A stretch of DNA of 64,000 nucleotides from Klebsormidium nitens (Eukaryota > Plantae > Klebsormidiophyceae), in the NCBI GenBank assembly GCA_000708835.1, contig DF237025.1, forward strand, positions 93,667 through 157,666, written 5' to 3'. The position numbers and the translations under genes were made by a program. This document shows, piece by piece, positions 11,047 to 46,259 of the stretch (positions are counted from its first letter, which is position 1; each line of letters opens with the position of its first letter). The notes under the pieces were generated by a model that saw nothing but the letters and a program-made list of their open reading frames with translations, searched no databases and had not been told where the DNA came from.

Positions 11047-14000
11047 ATGGATTCTTCCGATGATGTTGGAAGCATCAAGGCATTCCTGCAAAACTGCAGT
11101 GAGTCAGCCGGGCAGGTAAGTCAAATCATGTTCCTGACAAATCAAAGAGTGACCTTTGACCTACATTCTTGTGCAACGCCTGTGCTATGTAGGTCCAGCT
11201 TTTCCAAATGTGCCCCTTCTGCCTCATATGAATGCCGTCGTTCTAGCTTGAGCGTGCGCCTGTTTGAGGACGGCAGCTGTGATTGCCAAATCAATCAATG
11301 GATTGTGACAACCATAGATTGAAGTAACTTTTGTTTGACAAACCAATAAGGAGCTGCTCCATGTAGCCAATCGTCTGTGTTTCGGTGTCTGGTGGTTCGC
11401 TAGAATGAAGTTGGCACTTCTCTCTCGGTCAAGTAGTCAAGGTTGTTGAGGTTGTCCAGGATGATGTGGTGTCCGTAGGATCATGCTTCTGCCTTTCCCA
11501 TTCAGAACGTCCAATTCAGAAACATTTCAAGCCTGCTCCATCAAGGAATGTCTGACTTGGCCGCCAAGGGCCGCACCTGCACATTTGACATCCTTGACAT
11601 CGTTGATGCAGGCCTACAACAACTTCAAAGGTCTCCTGCAAAAGCTGGAGGATCCTCAATCCAGAGTTGCGACCCGAGTCTTCCTGGATGCAGTATACAA
11701 GTATGTGCAGAAAGAGGAGGCTGGGATTGACAGCCTCGCTAAGTACCACTTCAGGCTCCATGAGCTGGCCCTCTGCTATGAGGGTAGGCCGCTCCGCCTT
11801 CGGCTCTTTGGATTTCCGCAAACTGATTGATGGGACATACATCATCAGCTGTTGCCTGGTAGCTTTGAATTAGGCGGACCGGTTGTTGCCTTAGCACAAC
11901 TTCTGTGAGTTTCTGAGATGACTGCTTCCACACAGGGCATTGTATTTGCTGCCCGCTCAAAAGCAATGTGAAGATTCTGGAGGAGTGAACTTCTCTACAA
12001 GATTGTGACAGGGCCTCGCTGTTCAGTGGCGTTTGGTGCAGAGAAATCAGCTTGGTGCAGACTCGATGAGGTTTCAGCTCTTTTCGAACATTATCCTCTG
12101 ACTTATGATCAACGCAGTGAGTTTAATAATCGAAGACTGAGAGGAAAGTATGACGATCTTTCACGCATGTTTCAGGTTGGGAGCATGAAGCTGAAAGGCA
12201 GAAGTTGCAGCTGCTGGAGCTCCCTGGAATCTTCATCCCAGAGGAGTGGTCCTTCACCTTCTTTGAGGGGTAAGGAGGGGCGCTCAGGCTACAGTTGTAA
12301 CCTTGGCGACTCACCTGCGGACGCTGGTCAAGGCTTCAAGGTTCCAGCACTACAATACGCGACACTGTATCGCAATTGTTTTCCGTCTGGCCTTCTATGT
12401 AAGTGCCTCTGAATGTAAGCAGATGGGTGTGCCTGCAAAAAGCTTGTCGAAGCTGGATCCAGCACGCCTCCCATTTCACAATATCAGGTCATCAGAAGTT
12501 TGGTTTTGTTGCAGGCTTTCGCGCTACCCTGAGAGCGAGTTCCGGGACAGAGACGTCTGCGAACTCGGGTGTGGCAATGGCTGGGTCAGTCTGGCCCTAG
12601 CTGAGCGGTGGTCCCCCAGGAAGGTGCGGGCAACAACTTAGCTCAGATCTCCTTTTCCGCTACCATGTCCAGCGGTGCACACCAGTTTGCATTTTGTGTC
12701 ATAGGGACAAGCGACCCCTGATACTCCTGTCTCAATCTGTCCATGTCTTAGCAAGAGCGGGCTTGTGAGAACTGTATCGCCCTTCGCTCTTGCTTCAGAT
12801 TGGATAAACTCTGCTGCCCCGGCCAGTGAAGGAGCAGAAACCACAAAATCCTTACTTCTTCTTGATGTCTCATCCAACGTCCAGGTTATTGGCCTGGATA
12901 TCAACCCGCGCGCCATCAAGTGCGCTCAAATCAACCTGTTCCTCAACGCACTGAACCCTGACGGCAGCCCCTGCCTCGACTCCGAGGGCAAGTCCCTGCT
13001 GGACCGCGTCGAGTTCCACGTCAGCGACCTGCTGGCTCACTGCATTGAGAACAAGATCGTCCTGGACCGGATCGTTGGTTGCATCCCTCAAGTAAGGCTG
13101 AAGAAAGCAGGGTTATGGTTTCCGGTTTGGTCTGCTCGAGGAGACATTGCAAAGAGGTTGGTCTAGGCTAGCTTTAAAATCCCGTACTCTTCACGCTTCA
13201 GCTCATCCGATGTTAAGAGAGCTTACTCTGCTGGAAAGGCTCGTCGCGCATATTTATCCAGCATTCCAGATTGTTCTGTGCTTGGCAGAGGACAAGCCAA
13301 TGATTGGTATGAGCAACTTTCTAGCTTCACCGTTTCTGCCCACAGCTTGCTAGGAAGCTATAAAAATCCTGAGCGGATGCTTTCTCGTGACAGATCTTGA
13401 ACCCCGATCCGGCCGCAATGTCGAAGTTGGTCGTTGAGAACGCGAGCGAGGAGTTCCTCTACTCCCTCAGCAACTACTGCAGTATGCAGGTGACATGCCA
13501 CGATTTGTCTAGATGACATCTGGTTTGATTCGCCATTTGATGCATTTTTTGCTTGTGATTCAATGCTTTTCGCTTCTCTTTCCATGATGCATAGTTCCTC
13601 AGAAGATTATGGCGGTTCTGCAAGCTTCAGAAGAATCCGAAAGTCGCCCTGGATTGCTCCGAGTAGGAACTGTTTCGGCGACTTCGATGCCGTCTGGAAT
13701 TCGAAAACGGACGCCCTCGTACAGAACCCTCTGCTAACCGTCTCCTCTTCCGCCAACCGTCTCATCTTGGGCTCTCTTGCACTTCTCACAGGGGTTCGTG
13801 GAGGACCAGTTTGGTCTCGGGCTGATTGCCCGCGCCTTGGAGGAGTCGATCCAGGTAATCAAGCCGGCAGGCTCCATCATAATGAACATGGGCGGCCGAC
13901 CGGGGCAAGCGGTCCTAGAGCGGCTCTACCGGCGCAGGGGGTTCAACATACGCAAGGTGCGCGGACTCGTTTCATGACATTTGACTACTGCCTTGTGATA

Positions 14001-17000
14001 AGCCGGCAAAATTTCTTCGATCGTCTCTGAGGTTTGCCGTGATGCGGCTCGTATCGTACTCCAGCAGAATCTCCCAATTGCGCCATCGCTGAATCATAAC
14101 CTGGTCGCTTACAAGCATCACTTCTGTAATAAGCCGAATTGAAAGGTGGAGTGGAGTTCCATCATCCCCTCTGCACTTGGAACCCTTCTTGTCGAGCTTG
14201 AGAGCCTTGCTTCGAGACGGAAAGCATTTTCGGTCTTCCGCAAATTTTGGGATGTGAAATAGGTCGGTCAAGCTCGAATCTCCTGTGCTTCTTTTTCCAG
14301 GTCTGGCAAACCCGCGTAGGCCAGGCGGCTGACACCGACATCCTGGCGCTGGTAGAGATCGAGCGCAACAGCCGCCACAAGTTCGAGTTCTTCATGGGCC
14401 CCGTGGGGGTGGACCAGCCAATCAGCGCCAAGACGGCATATGCCTTTGCAAAGTCCGGGGGCAAGATCTACCACGGTCTCAGCGTGTTCGAGGCGAGGAT
14501 GCGTCAGCCCAACCAGGTAAACAAGCCGCACAGGTGTTCATGTCGAGTCTCGTTGAGGACAGAAGGTGGTGGACTTGCCCAGTTTGTGCTTTCTGTTTCG
14601 GCTTGCTCTGTAATTTTAGCCGTACTGTGCGCAGAAGTGACATGCTCGCTCCCGCTTCTCTTTTCTGCTCGTTGCTAGGGCTCGTTTGTAACGTTCCTTC
14701 GATCACAAAGTCCAGGCTTTCTGTCGGTGGTCCATCCAAGCAGGAAAGTTTCCCGTTTCTCCCTTGGGTCGAATATTCAGAAAACGGCATCCAACGTTCG
14801 AGCAAACTCTGCTACCAGTAGGATGTCTCTGTGGCCCATTGACTCCACTTTATTCTGCTCTGCCCACAGGTGAAGCGCATCTTCCAGTTCCTGTCCGACC
14901 CCGACTTCTCGGACACCCGCAGCGCGCTCGACCTGTCTTTCTCGTCCGAAGCCGTCGCGGACGAGAAGATTGCGTTCCTCGCGCACCTCGCCAAGTACCT
15001 CCAAACCTCTCCAAACTTCCCGTACGAACAGGCCGCGGGGTCCGACACGTTCCGGAACCACCTCGCGACCTTCCTCCGCCTCTACTTCCGGGTTCCGCTA
15101 ACCCAGGATAACCTGGTTATCGCCCCTTCCCGGCCGGTGCTAATCGAAAACGTGATTACGATTTACGCGCCAAGGTTGGCGCTCGTTGACGCGAGTTTGA
15201 CGGCGGGCCTGCCGCGGAAGTGGCTCGCGACCGAGCCGCCAAAGGAGGGCGGGGCAAGGCAGAGTCTAGAATCGGGCCCGGTCGTGATTGAGGCGCCCTC
15301 CAGGGCGGACCTGGTTCTGAAGCTCGTCAAGGCGCTGAAGCCGGAGCTGGTGGTCGTGGCACTCCCCGAGTTCGAGGTGAGGAGCGATTCGTTGGGGTTC
15401 CGCTCATCAACGCAACCGATTTGCGCTTTCTTTACTGCCAGCTCGTACCGGCAGTGATTTTTCTTGTCAAATTAGTAAATGCCTCGACACTACAGACATG
15501 CGGACATGTCGCAGCTCTGAACCGTGTCGCCGACAGGTTGTTTGTGTGGATCTAACTGTGACAGGCGATTGCGCTTTTTGTAACAAGGTCGCATCTCAAA
15601 ATACACTTGCACGAACCTCTTTTCCTGCCTGGTAATGCGTCCCCTGTCAGCGTGCAGTCTTCCTCGTCTCCACCTTCGTTTCTCGAGTTGCCATTCCGTC
15701 CTCTTCTCACGCACCCCAGGTAGTCGGCCAAAATCTTCGAGTAGCATTTTGGACGTGACTGCTTCTTTGCAGTGAAGTCGTGGGCGATCTTTCAATTACT
15801 GCTCCTGCATATCTTTCACTCCCTTTTTTTTAAAAGCAGCGTGTCCACGATCATGCTACACGTTCAGCTCACATCAAATCCTCATCTCGCGTTGTCCAGG
15901 TTCGGACGGCGACCGCGTTCGAGCAGCTTTTGGACGCATTCACGGACGTGGGCGCCCGATTGATGGTCGACCTGAGTGACCATTCAGACCTGTCCAGTGT
16001 CCTTTAAGTTCCACCTTTGCTCCGTTTTCGAGTGCACGATCTAACGGAAACTCGTTTTGTCCAGGTTCGGACGGCGACCGCGTTCGAGCAGCTTTTGGAC
16101 GCGACTGCGGACGTGGGCGCCCGGTTGATGGTCGACTTGAGCGACCACTTGGACCTCTCCAGTCTCCCTGGGGCCAACGGCGTGCTCGAGTTTATGGCCT
16201 CGAAGCCGCTACCTGCACATGCCGCCATCATTTGCGGCCTGGTCAAGAACCAGGTGAGAGATCCTGTTTAGTGACCTGTCGAGCGTCGATGAGGCATCTC
16301 TTTGTGTTTGCATTCTTGAAGCTGACGTGCTTCGTGGCTAAATGTTCTGCATGCTTCCAATCACCCCACGCAGTTGTATTACGAGTGTCTTAGACCTGCG
16401 ACAGCCTGCGGTTTGGAAGTTGCTGAACTTGTGGAAGTTCTAACTAAGAAGTTCGGCATCTAGAAAAGCCTGTTGCCGACTTTGCAAGTGCGAATTGAGA
16501 ACAAACATATGATGACGCGCCCCGCTGACACTTTCGGACGGACTCAAACGAACTTGGACGCATTTACTTCAGGTGTACTCGGACCTCCGTGTTGCTTTCG
16601 CCATCTCCGAGAACCTCGACTTCCTGAAGGGCCTCACCTGTGCTGGCGAGCTGACCTTCAACCGATCGCCCATTTTGGCGCAGCTGTATTACCAGGTACG
16701 GATCTCCATTACAATGCCACGTTTTCCAGTAGAGTGCATTTGCAAGAGTTGACCAAGTCCAAGGCTTTGTGACGCTTGCAATGTCCTTCTTATTTTCACA
16801 AGGCTGATTTGATTAGTCTTCAGGTCACGTTGAGTACTTTTGAGCTGTGGACAGACGCAATCCGTTCAACTAGTCTCCTTGTCGCCACCACCCCAAGCTC
16901 ATTCGTGTTCTCTCTTAAAAAGCGCCAAGCCTTTCACGGAGTTGGCAACAACCCAGCTAAGCAAGCATAAGTCCTTTCATTCCCGGCAGCCCATATTTCT

Positions 17001-19449
17001 CCCCGCTCTCGTTCTCTTCAGGACCTCCTCCACGAGCTGCTCGCCTTCCAGATCCCCGACCGCCGCTCCCTCCACGTCCGGCCCCCAGCCCCTGAGTCCG
17101 ACGCCGTCCGATCCCAATTCATCGGCTTCACCGCCAGCGCCCTCCGCGCCTTTTCACACCCGTCGCTCCAGCACCTGGAGCCTCTTCCCACCCTCGAACC
17201 CGTGCCCATGAACATGGGTGAGAACCGGCTCCCGACGCCGACGCCCGTGAAGCGCTTCGCGTTCGAGAGCTTCGCCCGGCAGAACATCTCGGACGCGGAG
17301 TCGGACCCGCGGCCGGAGATTTTGGCGATCCTGCTGCAGCGGTTGGGTGCGCGCCCTGAGCACGCCTACGAGGTGCATCTCGGGGACGGAGTCGCGCCTC
17401 TAGTTGCGCGGCTGCTGGCGGCGTGCGCGGAGGAGGGCGGGACGCTCTTGTACCCCAGGTGGGCTGCCGACAAGTTTAGTTAAGCCGCCTTGATACAACT
17501 CGTTCCCTTTGAAAGCAGTCATAAAGCAAAGGGCCAGCTATGTAGCTGAAGATAGCACTCCCCCTACTTGACAATCGCTCCAGCATTGAGCCCTCAGGTA
17601 AGCATGTGACAGAGTTGAGGTCGAAACCGCCAGCTTCCGACCTTCGTAACATCAGTTCAAGTTCAAGTTGCAGACAACCAGGGTGCGAGCGGAGGTGACT
17701 CGCTGCGGCCCTCTTTACTGGTCTTCAACAGAAACTCAAGCGAAGTGAATTGAAAACTTCGCACGAACAAATCTACCTCGTTCTTCGATCCTCACCCGAG
17801 TCGTCGTTCCTTTCTTGGCAGTGGCATGTATGGAGCCCTCACTGCTACGGCTCAGCTGTACAACGCGAAGGCATCGGCGATCAAAACGGACGTCGCCGAC
17901 CTTTTCAAGCTCACCCCGGACCAACTCCGCTCAGCCCTCGCCACGCACCACCACAAACCCTGGCTCGCTCTAGTTGCCCCGACCGTGAACCCCACGGGGG
18001 CGATTTACACCCCCTTGGAGCTGCTCGAGATACTGACAGTGGCCAAGGCGCACGGCGTCAAGGTGCTTATTGACACCACCTTCTCCGGGCTGAATTTCGA
18101 GCCTGCCGTGAGCACGCCCCGGGGGCCTGGGGCTGGTGTGAACGCGGCCCTTGGGCTGGGGGCGCTTTTGGAGCCGGCGGGAGGGTATGCGGTCGCAGTG
18201 CTGGGGGGCATTGCGAAGGAGTTCTCGGCGGGTGGATTGAGGTGAGGGACTGTTTAGCCGCTTGATAGGATACATGTTCCATAGCGATTCCACATGAGTC
18301 GGCTTTCTGAAAGTGGTGCACTCTGGTAGCTGGAGGAAGCGGCCGTTCTATTTGGTTTACGACTTATCAACTCTGAAGTAGAACCACGTTACGATAGGTG
18401 GATAAGTGGGCAGAGCCACCGACGTTTTTTGTGGGCGCCTTTGCCCATGTGCTCTTCGAGAATACACCGCCGGTCGACGCCGCAAAGAAAGCGATTGCAG
18501 CTGCGAAATTGCATCTCGAGAACATTCTTCTCAATTTGGCATCAATCGCTGAACACGATTTGAGTAGGAACATCCCCGCCTCTAGACTAAGGTGTTTCTC
18601 CGGCTCTTCTTGCGCATCATTAGTTGCAGCTGACTCACTTTTGTTGCTTGCCAGGTTTGGCTACGCCGTGACGCAGGACCCTTTCCTGTCGGACGCCCTG
18701 AAACAGGGCGTTCAAAGCAGCCCCCATCAGACGCTTCTCTACGCTGCCAAGAAAATCCTGGCTGCCCGCGTGAATGCGGATGAGCCCATCACGAGCCAAT
18801 TGGCACAGCAAAGGCGGCTTCTGCAGGTGAGGTTCTCTCCCCTTGCGGAGCGCAAGTGGAAAAGTCAGTGTTGACCGTTTGGTCTCTACGTTCCTCTCTG
18901 CGGTCCTGCTGTATAAAGGCAAGCAGACTTCGATTGGCTTTTTGGTACTGGAATACAGATGCAGGCTCGATAAGCCCTGCCAACCTAATCTGAGAGGCGG
19001 CCGGCGGCTCGGGGGCTTTCTTGCAAGCTTCGCGTGCGCTTTGTCTTGGCATGTGTCGACTGCCCTTTCGGACATGCCTTGAGCTTGAGCTCGGAGTTGG
19101 AAACGGACTTCGCTGCACTTTTTTGCAGGAGCGAGTTCAGAAATTCTCCCAGCTACTGACCAAGTCCGGATGGGAGGTCCTACTTCCGCACGGGGGCCTC
19201 TTCTTGATTGCCAAGCCGGCAGCCCACCTCGGGAAACCGTTCTCATACAAGACGCCGACCGGCGTCAAGACTGTACAACTAGACGCGGACAACATCCGAG
19301 AGGCCCTGTACTATACGACCGGCATCCTAGTCAATAGCAGCTCGTGGATGAGCCTCGACAATTACTGTAGGTTCGTGCTGAGCATAGAGGAGGAGAAGTT
19401 CCAGCGGGTCGCCGGGCTCATGGAGAAGTTTGTATCGTGTAAAGAATGA
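11047..19449 (+). CDS. MMT: Methionine S-methyltransferase (SMM synthase): SAM-methyltransferase + PLP aminotransferase-like domain, 15 exons, ~1098 aa
   Basis: Exons 11047-11115, 11612-11783, 12176-12269, 12515-12623, 12885-13091, 13394-13489, 13792-13956, 14301-14516, 14870-15376, 16065-16253, 16573-16695, 17022-17458, 17822-18241, 18655-18826, 19129-19449 total 3297 nt in frame. Motifs: IFIPEEWSFTFFEG, ELGCGNGW, GLDINPRA, LDRVEFHVSDLL, GFVEDQFGLGLIARA, NMGGRPGQ, AAIICGLVKNQVYSDL, FESFARQNI. Confidence 0.97.
15720..16007 (+). repeat. Degenerate intronic copies of the acceptor + 5' end of MMT exon 10
   Basis: 15900-16007 = ccag|gttcggacggcgaccgcgttcgagcagcttttggacgc..., near-identical to the exon at 16065 and ending in an in-frame TAA. 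An older copy at ~15720-15790 reads ttcgagtagcattttggacgtgactgc. Confidence 0.88.
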
Positions 19450-20703: not shown

Positions 20704-23700
20704 CTACACCATCGCCTTGGCCCCTTTTCCGTTTCCGTCCTCCACCCCCCCGGGCGTGCCCGGCTCCGTTCCGCCGATCTTCCGCTCGCCGTGCGTGGTC
20801 CGGTCGTATCCGTACCACCCGTGCACGGACTCGTCATACGTGAGGCCCTCTCCCCAGAGGGCATATGCCTCCTCCCCGTGCGCCGCGTCGTCGCCGATCT
20901 CCAGGTGCTCGTCCGACATCCGGATGGGCACGACCAGCTTCAGGAACAGCATGATGAGTGACGTCATCACGATGTTCCAGCCGACGATGAACATCGCGCC
21001 CGCGAGCTGCTTGCCGACCTGCGCCGGGGGGGAGGGGCGGTGTGACTGAGTCTGGTGGGAAGGTCCAGAAGCTTGAAAGGTTCGTTTTTCCTACATGGAA
21101 ACTATCAAAATCGTTGCAAGAAGACGAGCGCGGTCTACATCGTGATCCGCGCAGCCGGGAATAGTGGGGGTGTGAAGCAGAGTTTGCGAGTGGGCAACTA
21201 GAGGCAGAGGCAGAAAGCTTGCTCGATCGACCCACGAGAAGAAGAAGCGCCGAACAAGGACATTTTCTCCCAAAAACGTGCCTCATGGCATTCCAACATG
21301 GAGACGGGAAGATATTTCTCTCGCGGACCGTCCCCGCAACTGGCACACATCTGCACCATCTCATCCGTCAATTAAAGCACCCACTAAAGTCGGCTTCTGC
21401 GGCTACTCACCGGCGAACACATCGGCTGCGTGTTTTTCCAGAACCTCAGCACCGAAGCACATCCACGGAAAGCGACGAGGACAAGCCGAGGATCACAGAA
21501 GTAGCAAAAAAACGACATATTGGGAGACGGGAAACGAAGGACCCACCTGCCCGATTCCTCCCTGGACGAGCCCATTAGACGGCAGGCACGTCGGAAATGA
21601 CGCCGCCAGGTCGCGGTTTGTACGGATCTACCGCTTCAACACAACGGCTCGCTGTCTATCCGGATTCTCAGAAGGGATCAGCACCGAAAAGCGATGAAAT
21701 AATCTGATGGCGCATGATCATTAAGCATACTAGAGAAAAAGTATACGCGCGACGAGAAGAAGAAGATACTAACCTGCCCAATACCGCCCTGGATGAGCCC
21801 ATTCGACGGCAGATACGTCGGAAACGACGCCGCAAGATCGCGCGTCGTAAATACCCCGGTGAGGAAACCCCCCAAGATGCCGGTAACGCAGTGCGTGTGC
21901 ACCACGCCGAGCGTGTCGTCGATGTGCTTCAGGAGGGGCACTTTGCGCGCGAGCACCATCATGGTGAACCAGGGGACGGAGCCGGAGAACATGCCCTCCA
22001 CGATCGCGGCCCACCCGGGGATGAAGCCTGCGGGTTAAGAGAGGGTTAAGCGTGGGTTAGCAATGTGAACTCTTGGATGCTTCTGTGAACTTTACCGTTC
22101 GTAGTACCATTTCATTAGTCAGGGTCGAGGGTTCAGAGCNNNNNNNNNNNNNNNNNNNNNNNNNNNNNNNNNNNNNNNNNNNNNNNNNNNNNNNNNNNNN
22201 NNNNNNNNNNNNNNNNNNNNNNNNNNNNNNNNNNNNNNNNNNNNNNNNNNNNNNNNNNNNNNNNNNNNNNNNNNNNNNNNNNNNNNNNNNNNNNNNNNNN
22301 NNNNNNNNNNNNNNNNNNNNNNNNNNNNNNNNNNNNNNNNNNNNNNNNNNNNNNNNNNNNNNNNNNNNNNNNNNNNNNNNNNNNNNNNNNNNNNNNNNNN
22401 NNNNNNNNNNNNNNNNNNNNNNNNNNNNNNNNNNNNNNNNNNNNNNNNNNNNNNNNNNNNNNNNNNNNNNNNNNNNNNNNNNNNNNNNNNNNNNNNNNNN
22501 NNNNNNNNNNNNNNNNNNNNNNNNNNNNNNNNNNNNNNNNNNNNNNNNNNNNNNNNNNNNNNNNNNNNNNNNNNNNNNNNNNNNNNNNNNNNNNNNNNNN
22601 NNNNNNNNNNNNNNNNNNNNNNNNNNNNNNNNNNNNNNNNNNNNNNNNNNNNNNNNNNNNNNNNNNNNNNNNNNNNNNNNNNNNNNNNNNNNNNNNNNNN
22701 NNNNNNNNNNNNNNNNNNNNNNNNNNNNNNNNNNNNNNNNNNNNNNNNNNNNNNNNNNNNNNNNNNNNNNNNNNNNNNNNNNNNNNNNNNNNNNNNNNNN
22801 NNGGTAGATGCCCCCACTATCGCGGCCCCCCCCGGGGATGAAGCCTGCGGGTTAAGAATCAGTTAAGGGTGGGTCAGCCGGTTCGGATCTTAAGAACTCT
22901 GAGAAGACGAATCTGGTGCCACCAAGAACTTTGCAAGCAGGGGTGGAGCCGAGAATATGCCCTCCACGATCGCGGCCCACCCGGGGATGAAGCCTGCGGG
23001 TTAAAATTCAGTCAACTTAACTCGCCGGTTTGGATCTTGAAATCAGTGGGAAGACGATTCTGGTGCCACCAAGAACTTTGCCAAGCAGGGACTGAGTCGG
23101 AGGAGACGGCCTCCACAATCGCGGCCCACCCGCGGAGAAGTCTGCGGGGAAACGCGGGTTAAGGGTGAGCTAACATTTCAAATCTTCGAACGCGGTGTGA
23201 AGACGTTCTTTATGGAATCTGTTTAAATCAGGTTTGCAATTTCAGAGGCGTATCTACTATCGCGGTAAACAACCCAGGTGAAGCCTGCGGAACTGCTGGT
23301 TTTGAGAGTGGATTAGCAAATCTGGCTCAGAAAAGCGTTTGAAAAGACTTTTTCTTTGCTATGAAGTTGGGCGCCATGAATAACAACCCTTTTTCCCCAG
23401 AAGGAACAAGTACGTTAGGATTGGGTTAGCAGGTTCGAATCGAGAAAGCGTTCTTTGCACGTCGTCAGTGCCTCGATCGGGGGTTGGCGGTTCAAGCCGT
23501 AAATTGGCGGCCCACAAGAAGATGAGGCCTGCACAAAGATGACTGGCACAAAATTGTCGCCCTCGTCTTTAAGAAAGGTATGATTACACCTCTACCGTCG
23601 ACCTTCCGCTAAATGGAACCTGCCACGAAAACGAACCGCCATTGAGAAGATTTTTCTGATCGACCTTTTACAAACTTTGCCGACGGTGGACCGGGATCAC

Positions 23701-26700
23701 TGATGGACTGAGTATCAAACGAGCGCATTGCAGATTTCTTCTCTGCCGGACGTGAGACTGTACTATCGCTACGAGCAGGACAATCGCGTCCACTTTTTCT
23801 CCGAGCGTCAGTTTAACTACCAGTATAAACCGAATCAAAACTCGTCTTTAACTCTTCTCGGGAAGCAAAGGAAGAGACATCCGCCACAGACTAAACAAGG
23901 TCGCCCTCGATGTTATATAAAGGGACCCTCGAGGAGCACCTGTTTGGGAGTGCGAAGACTGGATTGTTTTGGGATTGCGTGTTTCCGTCTACACTCCGAC
24001 GGGTTTGGATTGCGAGCTGGGAGATAAAGTGTTCAAGACGCATTTCTGATAGTAAGCTGGCAGCTCCGAACATCTGACCACGAGATTGGGCACAAAATAG
24101 CTCATGACCAGTACGACCGGAAACCGACAACCTCTGGTTTTTGAGTTAGATCCCAGGTCCAGATGTGACAAGAAACGCTTTGCGGTTGGACCTTTGGCGT
24201 TGCGTGAAGAGCACAGGTGCTTCTTTTGCCTTCAGATGCCCTTATGAGTCGGAGCAAACAAACTCGCGACTCCGTTCGAAAAGCGACCGGGAAACAACCC
24301 TCTCCCGGTGGATTCTGGGCGGAATCTGCTGCTTACCGGCGCCTGGTGTGATGACAACTAGGCCGGTGATGATGCCCTGCACGGCGCCGATCACGGATGG
24401 CTTCCCGAAAAAGGCGTAGTCGAGGCACGTCCACACGAGCATGCTGGCGGCGGTGGCGAGATTGGTCTGCAAACCCAAAGTGGAAGTTAACGTCGATTTT
24501 CAAAAGGTGGTTGGTTGGTAACCAAGGTTCGTTGAGCGAGGATTGGTCAACAAAGGGGTTCTCTGATTGTGAGTTTTCTGGAAAGTCCTCGTCTGACTAA
24601 GTGAGAATTCTTAATGGAACCGGGGCTCGTTGAGCGAAGATTGGTCAAGAATGGGGTTTCATCAAACCTGGTTGAGCGCGGTGGCTGTGGTTTCATAGGG
24701 CGGCTTTGAGGTTCTTTCGGAGCTATGTCAGTCGCTTCATGAACCTCGATGTCGTCAGCCACTGCAAATAGAAACTTCATTGCTTGACGGGAAGACTTCG
24801 TCGAGCTCCTAAATAAGTCAGATAATGACTTTCGGAAAGGAAGTCAGAGTCTGAAAAAGGCTCAACAGCATGGCACCCGAAACTATTGGCGCACGAGTTA
24901 AAAACAGCCTGACTGACCGTACTTCGAGACATGATGCAGCCTACTGCACAGACGTCCAGAACAACCGACAAGCTGCGATTGACACCAGAGATGCAATATA
25001 CTCAAGCTCACGTTCAGGACGGCGATGCCGGCGTCAACGCTGGCAGTGTACGGATCTCCTCCGTTGAAGCCGTTCCAGCCGAGCCAAAGCATGCCGGCGC
25101 CCGCAAGAACGAAGATGATGTTGTTGGGGGGAAAGCGCTCGCGGTCACGCAGGAGACGGGGGCCGAGCTGCAGAATGAGGTCGAGTTAGTGGATAGAGTA
25201 ACAACAACAAGCTCGACGAAGAAGTTCACGATGTAATCAGAAACGGGTCAAGAGGGGATAACAAGAAACCCGATGACAGTACTGACAACTGGGCCCCTGA
25301 GCTTGGTAAGAGGTGGAATTCAAAATGAACAGGGTTACAGATCTTGAGGCAATGTGGACGAGTGATCAAGCTCAGCAGTTATCTTTATTCGAGGACTCCT
25401 GGTGGGGTGAACTTAATCCTGGTTAACTTGGAACTTTGCATATATGTCACTCGTCAGGGAGCCCCACTTAGCTGCCCTTTGCTGTGACAAACTGGAAGTA
25501 TCTGCGTCACAGATGTAATGCCAAATTAAGTGCTTATAAGATGTAAAAATGGCCCTCTAGTTGAAATAAAGAGACGTTTAAACGGGTTGTTGAGTCCCCG
25601 TTTCGTTTTGGTTGAAATCTGCTGTATGGATAATGTGACGACCCACTGTAATGACTGACCAATCTCAGGGCGGCCTCAGGTTTCACTCAGTCAATATTGA
25701 CCTGTGTCTTGGGCTCTCAGCATTCTGCGTTCATTTTCTTTTCTACTACTTTACATGTTAGCATAAAAGGATCTGACAAAGACCAGTATAAGCTGCTTGA
25801 GCCCCTCACTACTGCAGTAGAATTGAATCTTACGAAGCCAGTGGCGTTTTGTTTCAACCACTACATCACACAATTGAATGCATCTTAAAATTCCAAAGGA
25901 AAGGAACTATGAGTCTGGGCAGGTGCACCAGCACGCCAAGCGCTCAGCTGAGGACAGCAGCTCCTTTTCAGGCTGGCAGTTGATAGTTCTTGCTGCTAAC
26001 TTTTCTTTTACAAGTAGGTGGGAAGGCAGAAGCAGAGTGACTGAGAACTAGACAGCAGGCTGAGCTTCGGCTAAAGAGGCTTTACATGAGAGAGTCGAAG
26101 GATAAGTTTCACAATGGAAATATTTGCTGTTCCTGAATCTGTACTAACAACTTACATTGCCCCACTAGATAAAGAAGTAGAACCAGGTCGATTGAAAGCG
26201 CTTCTTACCCAGAATGCAGCGACGTAGCCCGCAGTCCCAGACGACACGTGGATGACATACCCCCCCGAGTAGTCCAGCACGCCCCACTTGAACAAGAACC
26301 CGCCCCCCCAGACAGAGAACGCGCCGACCGAGTACGAGAGCACTACCCACAGGGGCACAAACAGCATCCACGCCAGGAAGTTCATCCTCCCCAGTAGCGA
26401 CCCCGCAATCAGCGCGAGCGTGATCGCCGCAAAGACGCCCTGGAAGTAAACCATCGTCGCCATTCCGTAGGCCGCGGTGACATGTGCAGTGTACAGATCT
26501 GCCTGGACTGACTCAAAGCCCCCCCCGAGAGTTGTCCCCGGACGCCCCCAAAAGGGCAGCATGTACTTCCCGAAGGAGAAGCGGTAGCCGCAGATGGACC
26601 ACGTGAGGAGCACTGCAGAATACGCGTACATGACCATGAACGCGGAGTTGATCGCCCACTTTTTTTTGACCACCCCGCCGTACATCATCACCAGGCCCAC

Positions 26701-26826
26701 CATCGTCTGGAGCCCGACCAACGTCGCTGACGTCAGCTGCCACGAGTTGTCGCCGTTGTTGAGAAAGGAGACAGGGGTCACGGCGGCCATGTCCGGGGCC
26801 GGGGCGGGAGCCGAGACGTTGGCCAT
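20704..26826 (-). CDS. AMT2: Ammonium transporter, AMT2-type (copy 2), 5 exons, ~490 aa; intron 3 contains the assembly gap
   Basis: Exons 26826-26209, 25167-25012, 24466-24337, 22027-21774, 21018-20704. Internal exon sizes 156/130/254 nt are identical to copy 1, with the same motifs. Confidence 0.95.
21547..21627 (-). repeat. 81-nt intronic copy of the 3' end of AMT2 copy 2 exon 4, flanked by AG and GT
   Basis: Minus strand reads tag|atccgtacaaaccgcgacctggcggcgtca...ggaatcgggcag|gtgggt = [27 protein letters not shown], versus exon 4 end [26 protein letters not shown]. Confidence 0.85.
22140..22802. other. Assembly gap (663 N)
   Basis: Run of N between the real exon-4 acceptor and an array of its copies. 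Confidence 1.
22816..23532 (-). repeat. Tandem array (~143-149 nt unit) of the AMT2 copy 2 exon-4 acceptor + exon start
   Basis: Minus-strand AGs (ct on plus) at 22845, 22994, 23142, 23285, 23529, each followed by variants of gcttcatccccgggtgggccgcgat. The spacer tctggtgccaccaagaactttgc is repeated. Confidence 0.88.
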
Positions 26827-29011
26827 TGTTGCGGCGGGAACAAAAGTGAGCGCGGGTGCTGCCAACTGGCTCCCGAGAATCAGAGGCGGGAGAAAAGGGG
26901 CGGGGGCAACTGGTTTGAGCTGCCTAGCTCCAGCTGAGAGAAAGAGAGACACAGTACTGCCGGTGCCTAGTAGAGGGCGTATCGCGCACAGCTGACTCCA
27001 AGCTAGAGCAGTACTGGCGATCATTCGCAGACGAAGAGCTAGCTCAGGAATTGCTGATTGGAGCATGCAGGCGGACCGACGGAAGGAGGAAGATGATATC
27101 CCAAGCCAACACATGCATCGCCGGCATTCAAGACAGAAGGGTGCGACGCGGAAGCTTCATGATTAGAGCAAAGGGCATAAAGTCGCAGCTCAGATGCTTC
27201 GGATGCCTCGTCTTTACTCTTCGCTGCCTTCTTTGGCGGGCCAAGATCTAGGAAACTGTGGTCGGCATTGCACATGTGCCATTGGGCTTGCAGCCGTCTT
27301 CCTTACTGAAGACAAGCTGGACGTACCGATTCGACGTGTGTGCTGAGAAAGTTTGTGTCGTTTGACAAATGGACTTAAAAATTTCCCGGTTATCTCTCAA
27401 GTTGTTGACTCACGTCATTTTACTTGGCACTCGTTTAATACTTGCGGAAACTAGCATCAAACTACTCCCGACAAAAAAATGGAAGCTAAACGGGTGGTAT
27501 ATGCGCGTGGATCAAGCCATATTAAGTTATTAACCCACCAACTTTCAAGCAGCTCGCTTCGTTGTCGAAGCACTTGGGATGCGGCGACAAGAACTGCAAC
27601 CACGTGGAGGGAATCGAGGGAACCGAGGAGAAAGTAAAGATTAGGCAATGATGACGCCGCCGGAAGTTACGTCATTGATGGCGAGCACTTCCGAGCTTGC
27701 CCATATGCACACAGGCGGCCACACGGACTCCATATACACGTGCGGTAATTGTGTGGACATATGGCAGCTTGAAAGCAAAAGCTCCAAGATTCGTTGAAAG
27801 CCGTCCGATGAAAACCTCAGCGGTCACGATCAAGCCAAGAAACTACAAATCTTCGTAAAATCTGGAAGATTGTCAAGCTTTCTGTAGACTGTGACTGCAC
27901 GAGGGCTGCCACCTGCTGCCACGGATCGGGACTCGGGAGCACATTGAGGTTGCCTACGTTTTGACAAGGATGAGAACACGATGAGAACTACCGTAGATAG
28001 CCTGGGGCCCAGGCTGCTTCAGTATGTCGAAAGCATGTTACACTGCATGTGCCAGTGCCGAGCACTGAGGTCCCAAATGCATACGCTGCTGTACCTTAGT
28101 GCCGACGCAGAGCTTGCGATTGTAACCTACATGCGAATTTGAGTTGGCTTGGCCAACGCCTGTTGTGTTCTTGGTATTGTTGTTTCTATGTTGTAATTGC
28201 ATTGAATCACAAGTTCAGTCTGTCATCGACTGCGAGCATTCGAAGCGACTGCATGCGCACCTAATGATTAATTGTGGTAGACCCCGGCGGGCCCGCAATG
28301 GACAATGGCTATGCCGCGCTGGGCCCTGCATTCGCTCAGTGCAGCTCATTGAGCTAGTGACCCCTGTTTAATTGCTGCACCCGGATTGTCATACCGAATA
28401 CATCAACGGTATGTACGTTGTCGATCGGATGTACTGTAAAGTGCAATTTAAGAGAATATCGATTGAACGAAAAGCCCAGTGTTCTTGAAATGTATGATGG
28501 TACGGATAGTGACACGCGTACTTCTACACATTTTTCAAAAGAGTTGCTGCTTGTCGTCGATGTCGGATAAAGCTGCTATGTCGTCGTTTGACGGGCCCCA
28601 TATCAAAAAAATGGTTGGATGCAAACCAAAGCCATTTGCATGTCTTTGGTTGCCTTCATTGGAAAGGCCCCACTCACTACCATATTATCAGCGCTCCACT
28701 TGGTTTGCCTTCTACGTATTACAGCATGTAAGATGTGCTCGGAGGAATGTTCGGACACTTGCAATTGTATAGACCTTAAGAAAGGTCCAATCAAGAACGA
28801 GGGGCCCACTGAGGCGCTCATACCGCCTGTAGGACTTCCAATTAACATCCTCAAAATTTTCGAGTTTACAGCAAGGGAGAGCGCAAGTGCCATCTGGAAG
28901 CGACAGGTGCACTTCGGCCAGGTAGACCAGCTATGAAAAGCACCACTTCCCGAGCCGAAGAACACAATCACTGGCTTCGAGATTTCTGAACCACCTCGAT
29001 TAGCAAAGCTC

Positions 29012-41810: not shown

Positions 41811-42749
41811 TTAGCCTGAATTTTGTCCACTGCGGTCTCTTTTGCGCTTTTGCTCGCGAAGCTGCTTGAGTTTGTCTGCATCGCTTTGCATCCTTGCTTC
41901 ATAGAAAAGTTCTTCGAAACCTCCCTTCCCAAGCGTGCACCACTCCAAAAAAGCTTCGCGATCCGGCACTTCTGCAATGGTCTGAAGACTACACATGGTT
42001 TTGATGAGGCCCTCTTCTCCCATCTTGTTGGCAATCTCCGCCAGGCTTTGGACGACGCTTTTCCTCCACTTCAGTGTTGCTATGTCGAGCTTGCCTTGAC
42101 CGTAGACGATCTCCCTGTACCAGAGAACTGCTTCCTGGGAGAACTCCTTCAGGGATGTCACGAGAGACTTGGAACCATCCTGGTTCTTGCACAGTGGCGT
42201 GGTCCCGTCAAAAATTCGCTGCCATTCCGTCCCTTCTCGAGTTTCTAGCATTACCCTGTGAAAAAGGACCTCTCCATTGTTACTAGTCCGGACAACGCAG
42301 TCTGCGGACCTTAGTCCGGATTCCGTAAGGAACGACAGGTTACTGGAAGAAGTCAAGGCAGTTCCCTCGCTAATTATCACGTGACCTTGGATGACGGCTT
42401 TCTCTAATCCCGCTTTAGGGATTTTCCTCCAATTGAAAGCCTGGCTTGTGTTCGGCAGGTTGACAGCTTTTCCATCTACTAGGAAGTTGTGATGAAACAT
42501 GGCGGACACCCCGGGACTTTTCTGCCAAGAGTACTCGTCCCATTCTTCCGCAACCTGCCCATCCAAGCAAATAAGAAGCTCAAGCTTGAAATCATTATCA
42601 AAATACTTTCTGGCGCGAAGCTTCACAGTGGGGTTGGCGCTAATGATGCACACAACCGGCTTGGCGGAGTCTGCTTCGATGGTGAAGGGGACCAGTCCGC
42701 AGCTGGCTGCAGCCAGCGGCATGAGCCGCAAGGCTCTCTGGCTCTCCAT
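41811..42749 (-). CDS. Intronless divergent BTB/POZ protein with N-terminal beta-rich (MATH-like?) domain, paralog A, ~312 aa
   Basis: Long ORF; first ATG at 42749 (the track start 42779 is GTG). BTB-like segment SADCVVRTSNNGEVLFHRVMLETR..FSQEAVLWYREIVYGQGKL..VQSLAEIANKMGEEGLIKTMC; C-terminal KRKR. Coding status is supported by the paralog at 44239-45162; the domain call is by eye. Confidence 0.7.
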   Translation of the reverse strand: MESQRALRLMPLAAASCGLVPFTIEADSAKPVVCIISANPTVKLRARKYFDNDFKLELLICLDGQVAEEWDEYSWQKSPGVSAMFHHNFLVDGKAVNLPNTSQAFNWRKIPKAGLEKAVIQGHVIISEGTALTSSSNLSFLTESGLRSADCVVRTSNNGEVLFHRVMLETREGTEWQRIFDGTTPLCKNQDGSKSLVTSLKEFSQEAVLWYREIVYGQGKLDIATLKWRKSVVQSLAEIANKMGEEGLIKTMCSLQTIAEVPDREAFLEWCTLGKGGFEELFYEARMQSDADKLKQLREQKRKRDRSGQNSG

Positions 42750-44238
42750 GGCTTTGTTCAAGAATGTTGCCTTCGACACAAATCATGTCAAATGGTTCGC
42801 GGCAGGTGATCCCTTCTGGGGATCGTGCAAATGATTCGATGTGAGCCGTTCGATCAGCCAGACGCCATCGGACGGCCCAGATTCCCCAACAAAGATGTCG
42901 CGGGGATACTGCGGCTCCTCGTAGCGTGCAAGCGTTGGTCGCGGGGCTTCGCAGGCGCGATGTTTTGAGAATTTGGATGGTTTCCTGACTTGGACTGCAA
43001 GACGAGCTCAATTAGTCTTTGTAGCCGGAAGTAGAACTGATACTCGACGAACTCGATGGTTTCCACGAGCATGACATATTTTGATACTCGACGAACTTCG
43101 AGGTTTTCACCAGCACAACGTTTCTAAGACTACATAATTTCTTCGAAGATTACAATCTCCTTCAAGATGTTTGAACAAGGTGAATCGAAAGAACTGAAAG
43201 CATGTCCAATACTTGATCCGACATGAACCCCGACGCTGAGAATTTCCTCATTTGTTGTGTTTCATGAATTGAAAGATCAACGCAGGCAATTCCTGAGTTC
43301 CGATAGTATATACGAAAGTATTGACGTGGCGTGTCTTCCTGTCTTCTTAGTTTCAGACTGGGTATCAAGCGTAGGGGATATGTCAGTACCAGCGCTTGAG
43401 TTGGGTGTTGATTTGAGGGTTTTGGGTCGACCAGAAGCGAAAGACCTATTGTCACAGCTCTGAGGCTGGGCTTATAAGGGTCGGTCAGAATGCGGAACGT
43501 TCACATGTATTATATCCTTGACGGCTCTGAGGATTACAGAGTATCGTACTACATAGATTGGTCGAGGAGCGAGAATCAAGATTAGTAAAGGGAACCGCAG
43601 TGGCCTTCGAAGCATGGTGATGAGTCTTGCTTTTATTGACGTTTCTTGACACTTTGGATGCTAGTTGTCATGTGATGCACTCCCGCACCAGATGTTGCGG
43701 CTATTCGAGCATCGGTCAGACAGTTGAAGAGACAACCATGTCAACGGTCTGGTCGAAGATGAGCAAGGACATCGTGGTGGCAGACTGTTAGTCTGCTGTT
43801 TGCATCTGGCAGGTCCTCCACCAAAAACGCAACATAGGTCAAGCTGGACGCAAAATCCATCAGATAGGCACCTACTTTAAAAACCACAGCAGGTTACCAG
43901 AGCCACGAGCAGGTTTAAGAGACCGAATCTGCAAGGGTTTGATGCTCGGTGATGGGGAAGTAATCAAGCTATATATGATGGGGCTTTGCACCAGCGACGT
44001 CTATACACAATGGCAGTGCACACGCACAATACCTTCAACCTGAGAGTTGAAAAGTTGAAAGTCAATTGTCGAAGTAAGTCAGACCATATTGCTATCCTTA
44101 GCCCAACACTCTGAAGTGAGAAAACAGCACGAAAACACTAAGGACGCCACCGTAAGTTCTAGAACTCCGCCACCATTCTCCATTTAGCAAACCTAAGCTG
44201 TTGAATTCTTGCTCCCTCCGCTGATCAGCAGAATTGTT

Positions 44239-45162
44239 TCATCTTTTGCGTTTCAAGCCTCTGCGAAGTTCCTTCAGCTTGTCGGTGTCGCTACGCGTCC
44301 TTGCTTCGTAAAAGAGCTCTTCAAAACCTCCCTTCCCCTCTGTATACCAGTTGAGAAAAGCCTCGCGATCTGGCACCTCTTCGATGGTCTGAAGCTGACT
44401 CAACGTTGCGATGAGCCCCTCTTCGGCCATCTTGTTGGCTATGTCTGCGAGGTTCTGAACGGTGCTCTCTCTCCAGCGAATGTTTGCCATGTTCAGTCTA
44501 CCTGTATAGATCACTTCCCTGTACCACAAGATAGCATCGCGCTGGAACTCGTTTAGACAGCCTAACACAATCCTGGAGCCATCCTCGATTTTTATGAGTG
44601 ACGTTGTCCCATCAAAGATGCGCTGCCATTCAGTCCCTGCTCTTGTCTCCAGCATCAGCCGATGGAAGAGAACTCCCTGCCCGTCCTTTGGGATTACAAC
44701 ACAATCCGCAGATCGCAGTCCAGAGGCTGTTAGAAACGACTGACGGGCAGGAGGAGTCAAAGGAGTCGTTTCGTTGATGATCACGTGACCCTGAATACTT
44801 TGTTTGTTTGCAAGCACTCGAGGGACTCTCCTTGCATAGTAGTCTCCTTCGTGACTTGGCAGGTGTACAGGCTCCCCATCGACAAGAAAGTCGTCATGAA
44901 ACATGACCGATGCCACTGGTCTATCTGACCACTTCTTCCAATTCTCTGGGATGCCAGGGATTGAAATGACACATTGGAGATTGTACTCGTCATCTTCACT
45001 CAACAACTCTACTTGGAGCTTGACTGTGGGGTTGAAGCTGATTGTGCGCACAACGGCACCGCAAGGGTCCGCCTCAATCGTAAAAGGTACCAGAGAAACG
45101 CCAGCTTGCGGACCAACAAACAATGGCACATTATCAGATGAGGCCTTCATGGCTTTGGTCAT
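44239..45162 (-). CDS. Intronless divergent BTB/POZ protein, paralog B, ~307 aa
   Basis: First ATG at 45162 (the track start is GTG). Collinear with paralog A: LVPFTIEAD, NPTVKL, FLVDG, IQGHVII, SGLRSADCVV, GTEWQRIFDGTT, VPDREAFL, GKGGFEELFYEAR, KRKR. Confidence 0.7.
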   Translation of the reverse strand: MTKAMKASSDNVPLFVGPQAGVSLVPFTIEADPCGAVVRTISFNPTVKLQVELLSEDDEYNLQCVISIPGIPENWKKWSDRPVASVMFHDDFLVDGEPVHLPSHEGDYYARRVPRVLANKQSIQGHVIINETTPLTPPARQSFLTASGLRSADCVVIPKDGQGVLFHRLMLETRAGTEWQRIFDGTTSLIKIEDGSRIVLGCLNEFQRDAILWYREVIYTGRLNMANIRWRESTVQNLADIANKMAEEGLIATLSQLQTIEEVPDREAFLNWYTEGKGGFEELFYEARTRSDTDKLKELRRGLKRKR

Positions 45163-46259
45163 TGATTTAGGCCGGTACCAAGATTTGTTTTGCAGGCGGC
45201 AAAATCCTCCCCAAAAGAGGGAAGCAGGAGTCTTCACGCAAGACTTGATTCCTCTTTCCTCTCTTCTCTTGCGCCGGTGCCGCACACGCGCCGCACACTT
45301 GAAGTTGTGGGCATTTGCTCCTGCCTTGCTCGCCCTTGCTCGAAAGCTTGCTTGTTGAAGAAGCTTGCTCGTTGAACAAAGTTCGCTGGCAATATGTGGC
45401 GGCAGCTAGCTGGCTGATCAATGAGGAGGAAAGCCGCGCGGCGCGGCCGGCCGCGCACGTCCGACGTCGCTGGCCGGGCGCGGCCGCCGAGGTTCCGAGG
45501 TTTGGCAAGGTCGGATTCACTAAACGGGCGCGCGGCCGCGCGGCGCTCTCAGATATTCGGATGACCGGACTATTGCCCGGCCGGGCTCCTATATACCGTA
45601 GTGTCGGTCGGACCTGCTGCAGCATGCAGCTAGCACCGTAATTGTGACTGGGCGCCCCGCGCGCGGCCAGCAGGTATCCGACAGGGCCGCCTAGCTTGTG
45701 TCAAAACCCTCAGGCTAAAGCCTGGCCCTATTATTAGCCAGCACGGGAAGTCAGATTTGAAGGAATTCTGCTACAAGCTGAGGTTGTGTGCAGGGACGCT
45801 GATGACCCTCTTGCTGCACACCCAGTGTACAGGGCTGAGAATTGCAGGCATGCTGAAGGTTTGCGAGGAGCAAAAACCAACGAATAGACTCAACGGTCAA
45901 GGATCTAGGGAGTTCTGATCCATCTCAGAAACTTTGGAGCACGATTAAATGGGCAACAGGCATTCAAATGGACAGGCCTGATCACACCAAACTGTGAATG
46001 GGTAAAATCCTCTATGATGTTTCGCAGTGTTTCCACATCTTGATCTCTTGATTACAAGTTTAAAGCAGATAAAGCTGCAACATAAAAAACATGTTTCAAT
46101 GATGGACAGAGTTCAGAAAGGAAGAGAGGTCTGCTTCTTCTATGCCCTAGTGCTGAAGCAACCACCATTTGTCTTGGTAAACTGGCAGTAGGGGAAAACC
46201 AGGTACCAAAAGGGGGTCCAGACCTTAGCCAGCTGTTCTGTCAGCAGGCCTGAGAAGTC

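Follow-up and report, generated by a model that had tools for sequence, protein, structure and literature searches.

The 3' end of the MMT (methionine S-methyltransferase) gene of Klebsormidium nitens appears to encode a domain of the class-I aminotransferase fold that is probably still in its ancestral, cofactor-competent state, one that would bind pyridoxal 5'-phosphate (PLP) and carry out a second amino-acid reaction. The gene lies on the forward (+) strand of the window considered here, a stretch of 64,000 nucleotides (positions 93,667 to 157,666 of contig DF237025.1); all coordinates below are counted from the first letter of this stretch and refer to the + strand unless stated otherwise. 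To our knowledge, MMT is called a bipartite enzyme, and we know of no job for its large aminotransferase-like part. In the K. nitens protein, this part retains a predicted pocket composed of a Schiff-base Lys, an Asp for the pyridine nitrogen, the Asn of an NPTG motif, a stacking Tyr, a phosphate-binding Arg together with a Gly loop, and an Arg for the substrate carboxylate.

A preliminary description of the window had placed four motifs within the interval 17822-19449, which corresponds exactly to the last three exons of the gene and ends on the final base of the TGA stop codon. All four, VNPTG, LIDTTF, GGIAKEFSAGGLR followed across an intron by FGY, and YCRF, are indeed read in frame at the positions given there. 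The contact residues were tabulated by the numbering of aspartate aminotransferase (AspAT): the Gly38 loop, the phosphate-loop Gly, the stacking aromatic, Asn194, Asp222, Tyr225, Ser255, Lys258, Arg266, and Arg386. The first exon of the aminotransferase-like domain (17025-17458, donor GT at 17459) contains the codons of a G-E-N loop (17217-17225) and of the phosphate-loop Gly within GDGVAPL (17388-17390). The core exon (17822-18241, acceptor AG at 17820-17821, donor GT at 18242-18243) encodes most of the remaining contacts: the ring-stacking Tyr (17829-17831), the Asn of VNPTG equivalent to Asn194 (17988-17990), the Asp of LIDTTF equivalent to Asp222, which pairs with the pyridine nitrogen (18072-18074), the Phe of LIDTTF at the Tyr225 position (18081-18083), an Ala at the Ser255 position (18213-18215), and the Lys of GGIAKEFSAGGLR equivalent to Lys258, whose AAG codon lies at 18216-18218. 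The codon for the equivalent of the phosphate-binding Arg266 is split AG/G by a phase-2 intron, with AG at 18240-18241 and the last base at 18655, where the next exon begins G TTT GGC TAC; the protein thus reads GGLRFGY, like its unbroken homologues from intronless genes. This third exon (18655-18826, acceptor AG at 18653-18654, donor GT at 18827) finishes the Arg codon and continues FGYAVTQD. The last exon, read from the sequence (19129-19449, with the stop codon at 19447-19449), carries the YCRF Arg (19369-19371), which is equivalent to the α-carboxylate-binding Arg386. The splice junctions are based on GT-AG borders, on continuity in homologues, and on conservation in a second Klebsormidium-like species (L002, described below); GT-AG borders are present at the three 3'-most introns of the gene, which are the introns that were read.

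Several lines of evidence place these residues at the catalytic positions of true aminotransferases. The core exon by itself matches Pfam PF00155 with an E value of 8.7e-12 (45.3 bits, the cut-off being 19.7). The Lys shares its column in multiple alignments with the lysine of SK..G.R.G in six genuine aminotransferases, which bears out the earlier assignment of this residue to the Schiff-base position. A scan of the core exon against 1.84 billion representative proteins returned 103 homologues, and among these, once aligned, the same column is the lysine of SK..TGWR.G in ordinary aminotransferases of 390 residues. Given the PF00155 match of the exon and the column shared with true aminotransferases, the motif set is beyond chance. 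A profile built from 20 bacterial-type MMT C-terminal domains finds solved aminotransferases with an E value of 4.6e-27 (4MY5, 6F77, 1DJU, and the Thermus AspAT), aligning NPTG on NPTG, D..F on D..Y, SKE..GGLRFG on SK..TGWR.G, and CRF on the carboxylate Arg, with the Arg of YCRF falling on the arginine of RISY or RFVL in the solved enzymes. In addition, the predicted model of the equivalent domain from a close, zygnematophyte-like homologue (predicted local distance difference test score, pLDDT, of 88.8) has its best structural matches in the Pyrococcus aromatic, the prephenate, and the Thermus aspartate aminotransferases, with template modelling (TM) scores of 0.73-0.86. The Thermus glutamine aminotransferase solved with 4-methylthio-2-oxobutanoate is also among the matches of this model.

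The class I aspartate, aromatic, and prephenate aminotransferases (4MY5, 6F77, 1DJU/1GD9, 1BJW) are therefore alike in fold, with the Lys, Asp, Asn, both Arg residues, and the stacking aromatic all aligned. Unlike them, the MMT domain sits behind a methyltransferase, has G-E-N rather than G-E-P, has Phe in place of Tyr225, and lacks Tyr70; identity is 15-20%. The MMT profile also matches ACC (1-aminocyclopropane-1-carboxylate) synthase (E value about 5e-17) and GntC (1e-16), which have the same fold, but more weakly than it matches true transaminases, and these alignments do not cover the loop at G-E-N. Both are class-I-fold PLP enzymes that work at the γ carbon, and ACC synthase, whose substrate S-adenosylmethionine (SAM) is a sulfonium, has an A-E-N loop that may correspond to the G-E-N of MMT. 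GntC is also the top NCBIfam model for the domain, at 63-73 bits against a cut-off of 415; the domain is thus a non-member, and this name was rejected.

The retained set is best appreciated by comparison with bacterial 'plant-like' full-length MMTs. These proteins have the same two-domain fusion, the same active-site set, the G-E-N loop, and Phe at the Tyr225 position, and are 28-39% identical to the aminotransferase-like exons of the window; unlike the K. nitens gene, their genes are intronless and lie in bacterial surroundings. Their dual-domain structure has been noted, without discussion of PLP residues (PMC9135737). The same study describes MmtN, a bacterial enzyme of dimethylsulfoniopropionate (DMSP) synthesis, which is homologous to the methyltransferase domain at the N-terminus and converts methionine (Met) to S-methylmethionine (SMM) as MMT does, but without an aminotransferase-like domain (PMC9135737). 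The bacterial-type set used here consists of 34 full-length, Lys-bearing representatives with pairwise identities of 36-45% to the bacterial-type sequence P0004; where the sources are named or have context, they are a metagenome-assembled genome (MAG) of Myxococcales, a Moorena MAG, and a MAG contig with bacterial neighbours. In all 34, the Gly loop, stacking Tyr, Asn, Asp, Lys, Arg266, and Arg386 are invariant, and K. nitens has the same residue in each case. Phe at the Tyr225 position is a family trait, present in 33 of the 34, and Ala at the Ser255 position is found in three of them as well as in aminotransferase-like matches.

The gene surroundings of the bacterial MMTs vary. In one bacterial lineage (L005 and L006, 7001-12237), the full-length MMT gene ends in a stop codon that overlaps with the start of the next gene, which is acetyl-CoA-synthetase-like (ACAS_N + AMP-binding), which suggests that MMT and the acyl-CoA ligase are co-translated in that lineage. 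In a different bacterium (L004, 42-10219), MMT lies downstream of a heat-shock cluster, dnaK-grpE-dnaJ-merR-hsp20-lon, in the same orientation, and other contexts contain OsmC, glutaredoxin, AhpC, and LEA_2; MMT is thus loosely associated with stress genes.

Land-plant MMTs (EC 2.1.1.12), such as those of Marchantia, Selaginella, and rice, are orthologous to the K. nitens protein, have the same three-part architecture, and are 50-54% identical to it overall, but they differ sharply in the pocket. The 119 sequences compared here include mosses, liverworts, lycophytes, a fern, a conifer, Amborella, Nymphaea, and grasses, the mosses Physcomitrium and Ceratodon being represented by two sequences recognised through their clusters. 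None of the 119 has the Schiff-base Lys; the position is occupied by Leu (60), Phe (38), Ser (7), Thr (4), Pro (4), Gln (2), Met (2), or Cys (1). Arg266 is kept in eight, the stacking Tyr is changed to Asn in 113, and the phosphate-loop Gly is present in none, whereas K. nitens retains them all. The statement in the preliminary description that angiosperm MMTs lack this Lys is therefore correct, and one plant fragment, GCLSLNLLSGALKLGF, is a near-match to the string given there. Contacts were compared with other positions over 50 columns, eight of them cofactor or substrate contacts and 42 others, at which the bacterial-type set is near-invariant and the window has sequence. K. nitens retains 8/8 of the contacts and 35/42 of the others. 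Land plants retain 35% of the contacts versus 74% of the other positions, indicating that it is the contacts that have been lost preferentially (Fisher p 0.004-0.04 per species). The land-plant domain thus looks like a selectively disarmed form of a conserved fold, a pseudo-enzyme-like relic.

The rest of the gene leaves little doubt about what it encodes. Using full-length MMTs as tblastn queries, 13 to 15 in-frame, collinear pieces without internal stops are found, which together span residues 25-1083 of Selaginella MMT. The whole gene (11047-19449) has about 15 exons, running from the ATG at 11047, the start of the first-exon open reading frame (ORF), to the TGA at 19447-19449. Within 11609-14522 are the exons of the N-terminal SAM-dependent methyltransferase domain, with matched pieces at 11609-11773, 12193-12270, 12516-12626, 12882-13094, 13391-13504, 13789-13959, and 14298-14522, and the exon at 12516-12626 contains ELGCGNGW, the GxGxG motif of class-I SAM methyltransferases. 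An MMT-specific middle region follows (14867-16692; exons 14867-15391, 16062-16256, and 16570-16692), for which a Pfam search gave no match. This middle region and the C-terminal PF00155 domain are collinear within one gene, as is characteristic of MMT orthologues.

Overall identity to the K. nitens gene is 53.6% for Calypogeia, 51.5% for Closterium, 49.5% for Selaginella, and 44.6% for the best bacterial-type sequence (P0004), and varies along its length. The six methyltransferase pieces from 12193 onward have a best land-plant identity of 74-85%, a land-plant median of 68-77%, and a bacterial-type median of 44-61%; the piece at 11609-11773 is less conserved (53, 42, and 27%, respectively), and the middle-region exons reach a best land-plant identity of 54-72%. 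Taken together, exons 1-11 have a median identity of about 70% to land plants versus 55% to the bacterial-type sequences, while the last three exons have medians of 34% and 38%, respectively. This last pattern is what would be expected if the plant domain sped up after its function was lost.

Phylogenetic trees place the gene among those of streptophytes. The K. nitens exons were searched, aligned, and placed singly, the full-length protein tree being built from the other sequences; supports are Shimodaira-Hasegawa-like (SH-like) values from FastTree, and hornworts, Chara, Coleochaete, Chlorokybus, and Mesostigma were left out of the sampling. In four single-exon trees, K. nitens groups with embryophytes and streptophyte algae, and every bacterial-type sequence falls outside this group (SH-like 0.95-0.996). 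For the 175-residue middle exon, the grouping with embryophytes plus streptophyte algae has an SH-like support of 0.99. With added algae, four exon trees place K. nitens directly as sister to Zygnematophyceae plus embryophytes (SH-like 0.82-0.99), which is the place of Klebsormidium in the species tree. In the full-length protein tree, a streptophyte clade (support 1.0) is nested among bacterial-type sequences, and within it, a zygnematophyte algal clade is sister to embryophytes.

The algal clade contains sequences with very different degrees of retention. Two transcript contigs (P0394 and P0395) keep the full contact set and have Tyr at the Tyr225 position. Spirogloea keeps the Lys and Arg266 but is missing other contacts, and P0396 and P0397 keep the Lys but not Arg266. 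The Lys position is Asn in Mesotaenium and Pro in three Closterium strains. The Closterium MMT models (P0037 and related) are themselves unusual in being 1300-2100 residues long with an additional N-terminal PF02575 match, and are either fused models or real extensions. Since several sequences of the algal clade keep the Lys, the ancestor shared by Zygnematophyceae and embryophytes already had it. The intact site is common to all 34 Lys-bearing bacterial-type homologues and to several streptophyte algae, and the K. nitens gene falls in the streptophyte clade; on this evidence the site is ancestral, as had been proposed. The proposal that the Lys disappeared in flowering plants needs to be revised, since it is absent from all sampled embryophytes (mosses, liverworts, lycophytes, fern, and conifer included) as well as from Closterium and Mesotaenium. 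A single loss, no later than the common ancestor of the sampled land plants, accounts for the embryophytes, and some Zygnematophyceae (Closterium, Mesotaenium) lost the Lys separately. Along the line to land plants, the Lys, phosphate Arg, stacking Tyr, and Gly loop would have been replaced while the remainder of the domain was kept, yielding a pseudo-enzyme domain.

A second Klebsormidium-like species provides a view of selection on the gene. A 115-kb eukaryotic contig (L002, Joint Genome Institute metagenome 3300060285) contains an MMT orthologue with 81-97% protein identity per exon, the same exon pattern, identical motifs, and the same split Arg codon. The synonymous divergence (dS) between the two genes is 0.75-1.0, near saturation, and about 0.75 within the aminotransferase-like domain. 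The ratio of nonsynonymous to synonymous divergence (dN/dS) is 0.035 for the methyltransferase exons, 0.09 for the middle region, and 0.14 for the aminotransferase-like exons. Thus, the K. nitens MMT gene is under purifying selection.

Because full-length bacterial-type homologues keep exactly the same residues, we infer that PLP is most likely bound by the domain. The second reaction would probably involve an amino acid tied to the methyltransferase step, that is, SMM, Met, or its keto acid. The leading candidate is transamination, since the closest relatives in both sequence and structure are aspartate, aromatic, and prephenate aminotransferases; possible examples are the transamination of SMM towards a DMSP-aldehyde route, or of 4-methylthio-2-oxobutanoate to Met. 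An elimination that releases dimethyl sulfide (DMS) would be a lead only, suggested by the excellent γ leaving group of SMM, with ACC synthase and GntC being the weaker matches. A more specific but tentative idea is that the MMTs of Myxococcota, cyanobacteria, and other bacteria, and of early-diverging streptophyte algae, may be bifunctional, such that SMM is made and then converted at once by the fused PLP domain. The products would be 4-dimethylsulfonio-2-oxobutyrate on the way to DMSP, or DMS and a C4 product by γ-elimination; alternatively, the PLP domain could provide Met from its keto acid.

Several observations weigh against a catalytically competent domain. The preliminary description had credited the protein with a full PLP motif set, and this stands for the Lys, Asp, Asn, stacking Tyr, both Arg residues, and the Gly loop; however, Tyr225, which makes a hydrogen bond to O3' of PLP, is Phe, Ser255, a phosphate contact, is Ala, and the equivalent of Tyr70, which comes from the partner subunit, is missing. 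The Tyr70 column is Tyr in 6/6 true aminotransferases and Asp in K. nitens, where a 4-residue deletion adjoins it; in bacterial-type MMTs, Tyr is not among the five commonest residues of the column, and the equivalent is absent from all MMTs examined. Seven positions that are invariant in bacterial-type homologues are changed in K. nitens, including the R-x-D-Y ahead of the G-E-N loop, invariant in bacterial full-length MMTs, which is P-M-N-M. The aminotransferase-like domain is evolving 4 times faster than the methyltransferase domain (dN/dS of 0.14 versus 0.035), and the independent losses of the Lys in several streptophyte lineages suggest that a second activity was already dispensable. Moreover, the five bacterial gene neighbourhoods considered contain no conserved partner that points to a reaction, and a literature search for PLP in MMT returned nothing relevant and no biochemical evidence of PLP binding in any MMT. 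R-x-D-Y itself does not appear to be a general catalytic requirement, since an R-L-D is present at this place in only two of the six true aminotransferases and the other four are without it.

Other explanations of the retained pocket have to be considered alongside a PLP-binding domain with a second reaction. The domain might bind PLP, or an amino-acid ligand through PLP, and regulate the methyltransferase as a sensor or as a module for oligomerisation, in the manner of the aminotransferase-like domains of MocR and GabR. The continued constraint on the domain in Lys-less land plants, which keep 74% of the non-contact invariant positions, implies a role with no need of catalysis, and the lack of a conserved pathway partner at bacterial loci and the presence of a MocR-like model among the weak NCBIfam matches fit such a module. 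Yet the α-carboxylate Arg and the entire contact set are invariant in 34/34 homologues, which is more than the anchoring of a cofactor needs, and the closest relatives by sequence and by fold are active transaminases; we regard a purely regulatory module as unlikely. It is rather unlikely, too, that the K. nitens domain is already inactive and free of PLP, with the Lys and its partners persisting through slow decay or structural need. Such persistence would be in keeping with the Ala at Ser255, with the replacement of R-x-D-Y, and with the presence of every stage of decay in related algae, where Spirogloea, P0396, and P0397 have the Lys but are minus other contacts; in addition, given that 43/50 invariant positions are retained, keeping 8/8 contacts is not statistically unusual (Fisher p 0.58). 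On the other hand, all eight contacts have been kept despite a very long separation from bacteria, and also in L002 at a dS of about 0.75, while the lineages that lost the function each lost several contacts, and Ala at the Ser255 position also occurs in the bacterial-type MMTs and aminotransferase-like matches noted above.

If the K. nitens MMT, or its C-terminal half, had been acquired separately from a bacterium, the intact site would not be ancestral. The slightly higher median identity of the last three exons to bacterial-type sequences (38% versus 34% for land plants) and the last-exon tree, which groups K. nitens with two bacterial-type sequences, are what such an acquisition would predict. 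It is nevertheless highly improbable: seven of the eight exon trees place K. nitens in the streptophyte clade, among them that of the first exon of the aminotransferase-like domain (SH-like 0.99), the gene has many introns, with canonical GT-AG borders at the three 3'-most, and shares its exon pattern with L002, and the similarity of the last exons is explained by faster divergence of the decayed plant domain. On the exon-wise identities and trees, a separate bacterial origin of the Klebsormidium gene was rejected.

Elsewhere in the window, a run of N (22100-22800) marks an assembly gap that produces long X stretches in two ORFs and adjoins ammonium-transporter exons at about 21678-22049 on the minus strand. 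A further ammonium-transporter exon on the minus strand (26152-27114) encodes 320 residues that are 100% identical to the NCBI entry 'ammonium transporter 2 [Klebsormidium nitens]', a match that establishes the species. The neighbouring long minus-strand ORFs at 41811-42779 and 44239-45285 encode related proteins, with LVPFTIEAD, GLRSADCVV, and TEWQRIFDGTT in both, and look like a tandem duplicate.

An earlier survey did not find MMT genes in algae and concluded that they arose in the land-plant ancestor (PMC6284425). The predicted genes of Klebsormidium, Spirogloea, Mesotaenium, and Closterium contradict this absence and show that MMT is older than the survey states. A literature search for Klebsormidium together with MMT yielded no paper that links the two, nor any that describes an intact PLP site. 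The loss of the Lys can now be dated to after the split of Zygnematophyceae from embryophytes and no later than the last ancestor shared by the sampled land plants, some Zygnematophyceae having lost it in parallel, and the plant domain would be what is left, after decay, of a domain whose conservation in bacteria and Klebsormidium is strict, cofactor contacts included. The reason for the fusion of a methyltransferase to a PLP fold thus becomes testable, with the land-plant protein as a natural negative control. If these MMTs are truly bifunctional, the SMM cycle of land plants would have arisen by the disabling of the second half of an older two-step pathway, and should SMM be the substrate of the second activity, soil and freshwater microbes could turn out to have an overlooked way of making DMSP or DMS.

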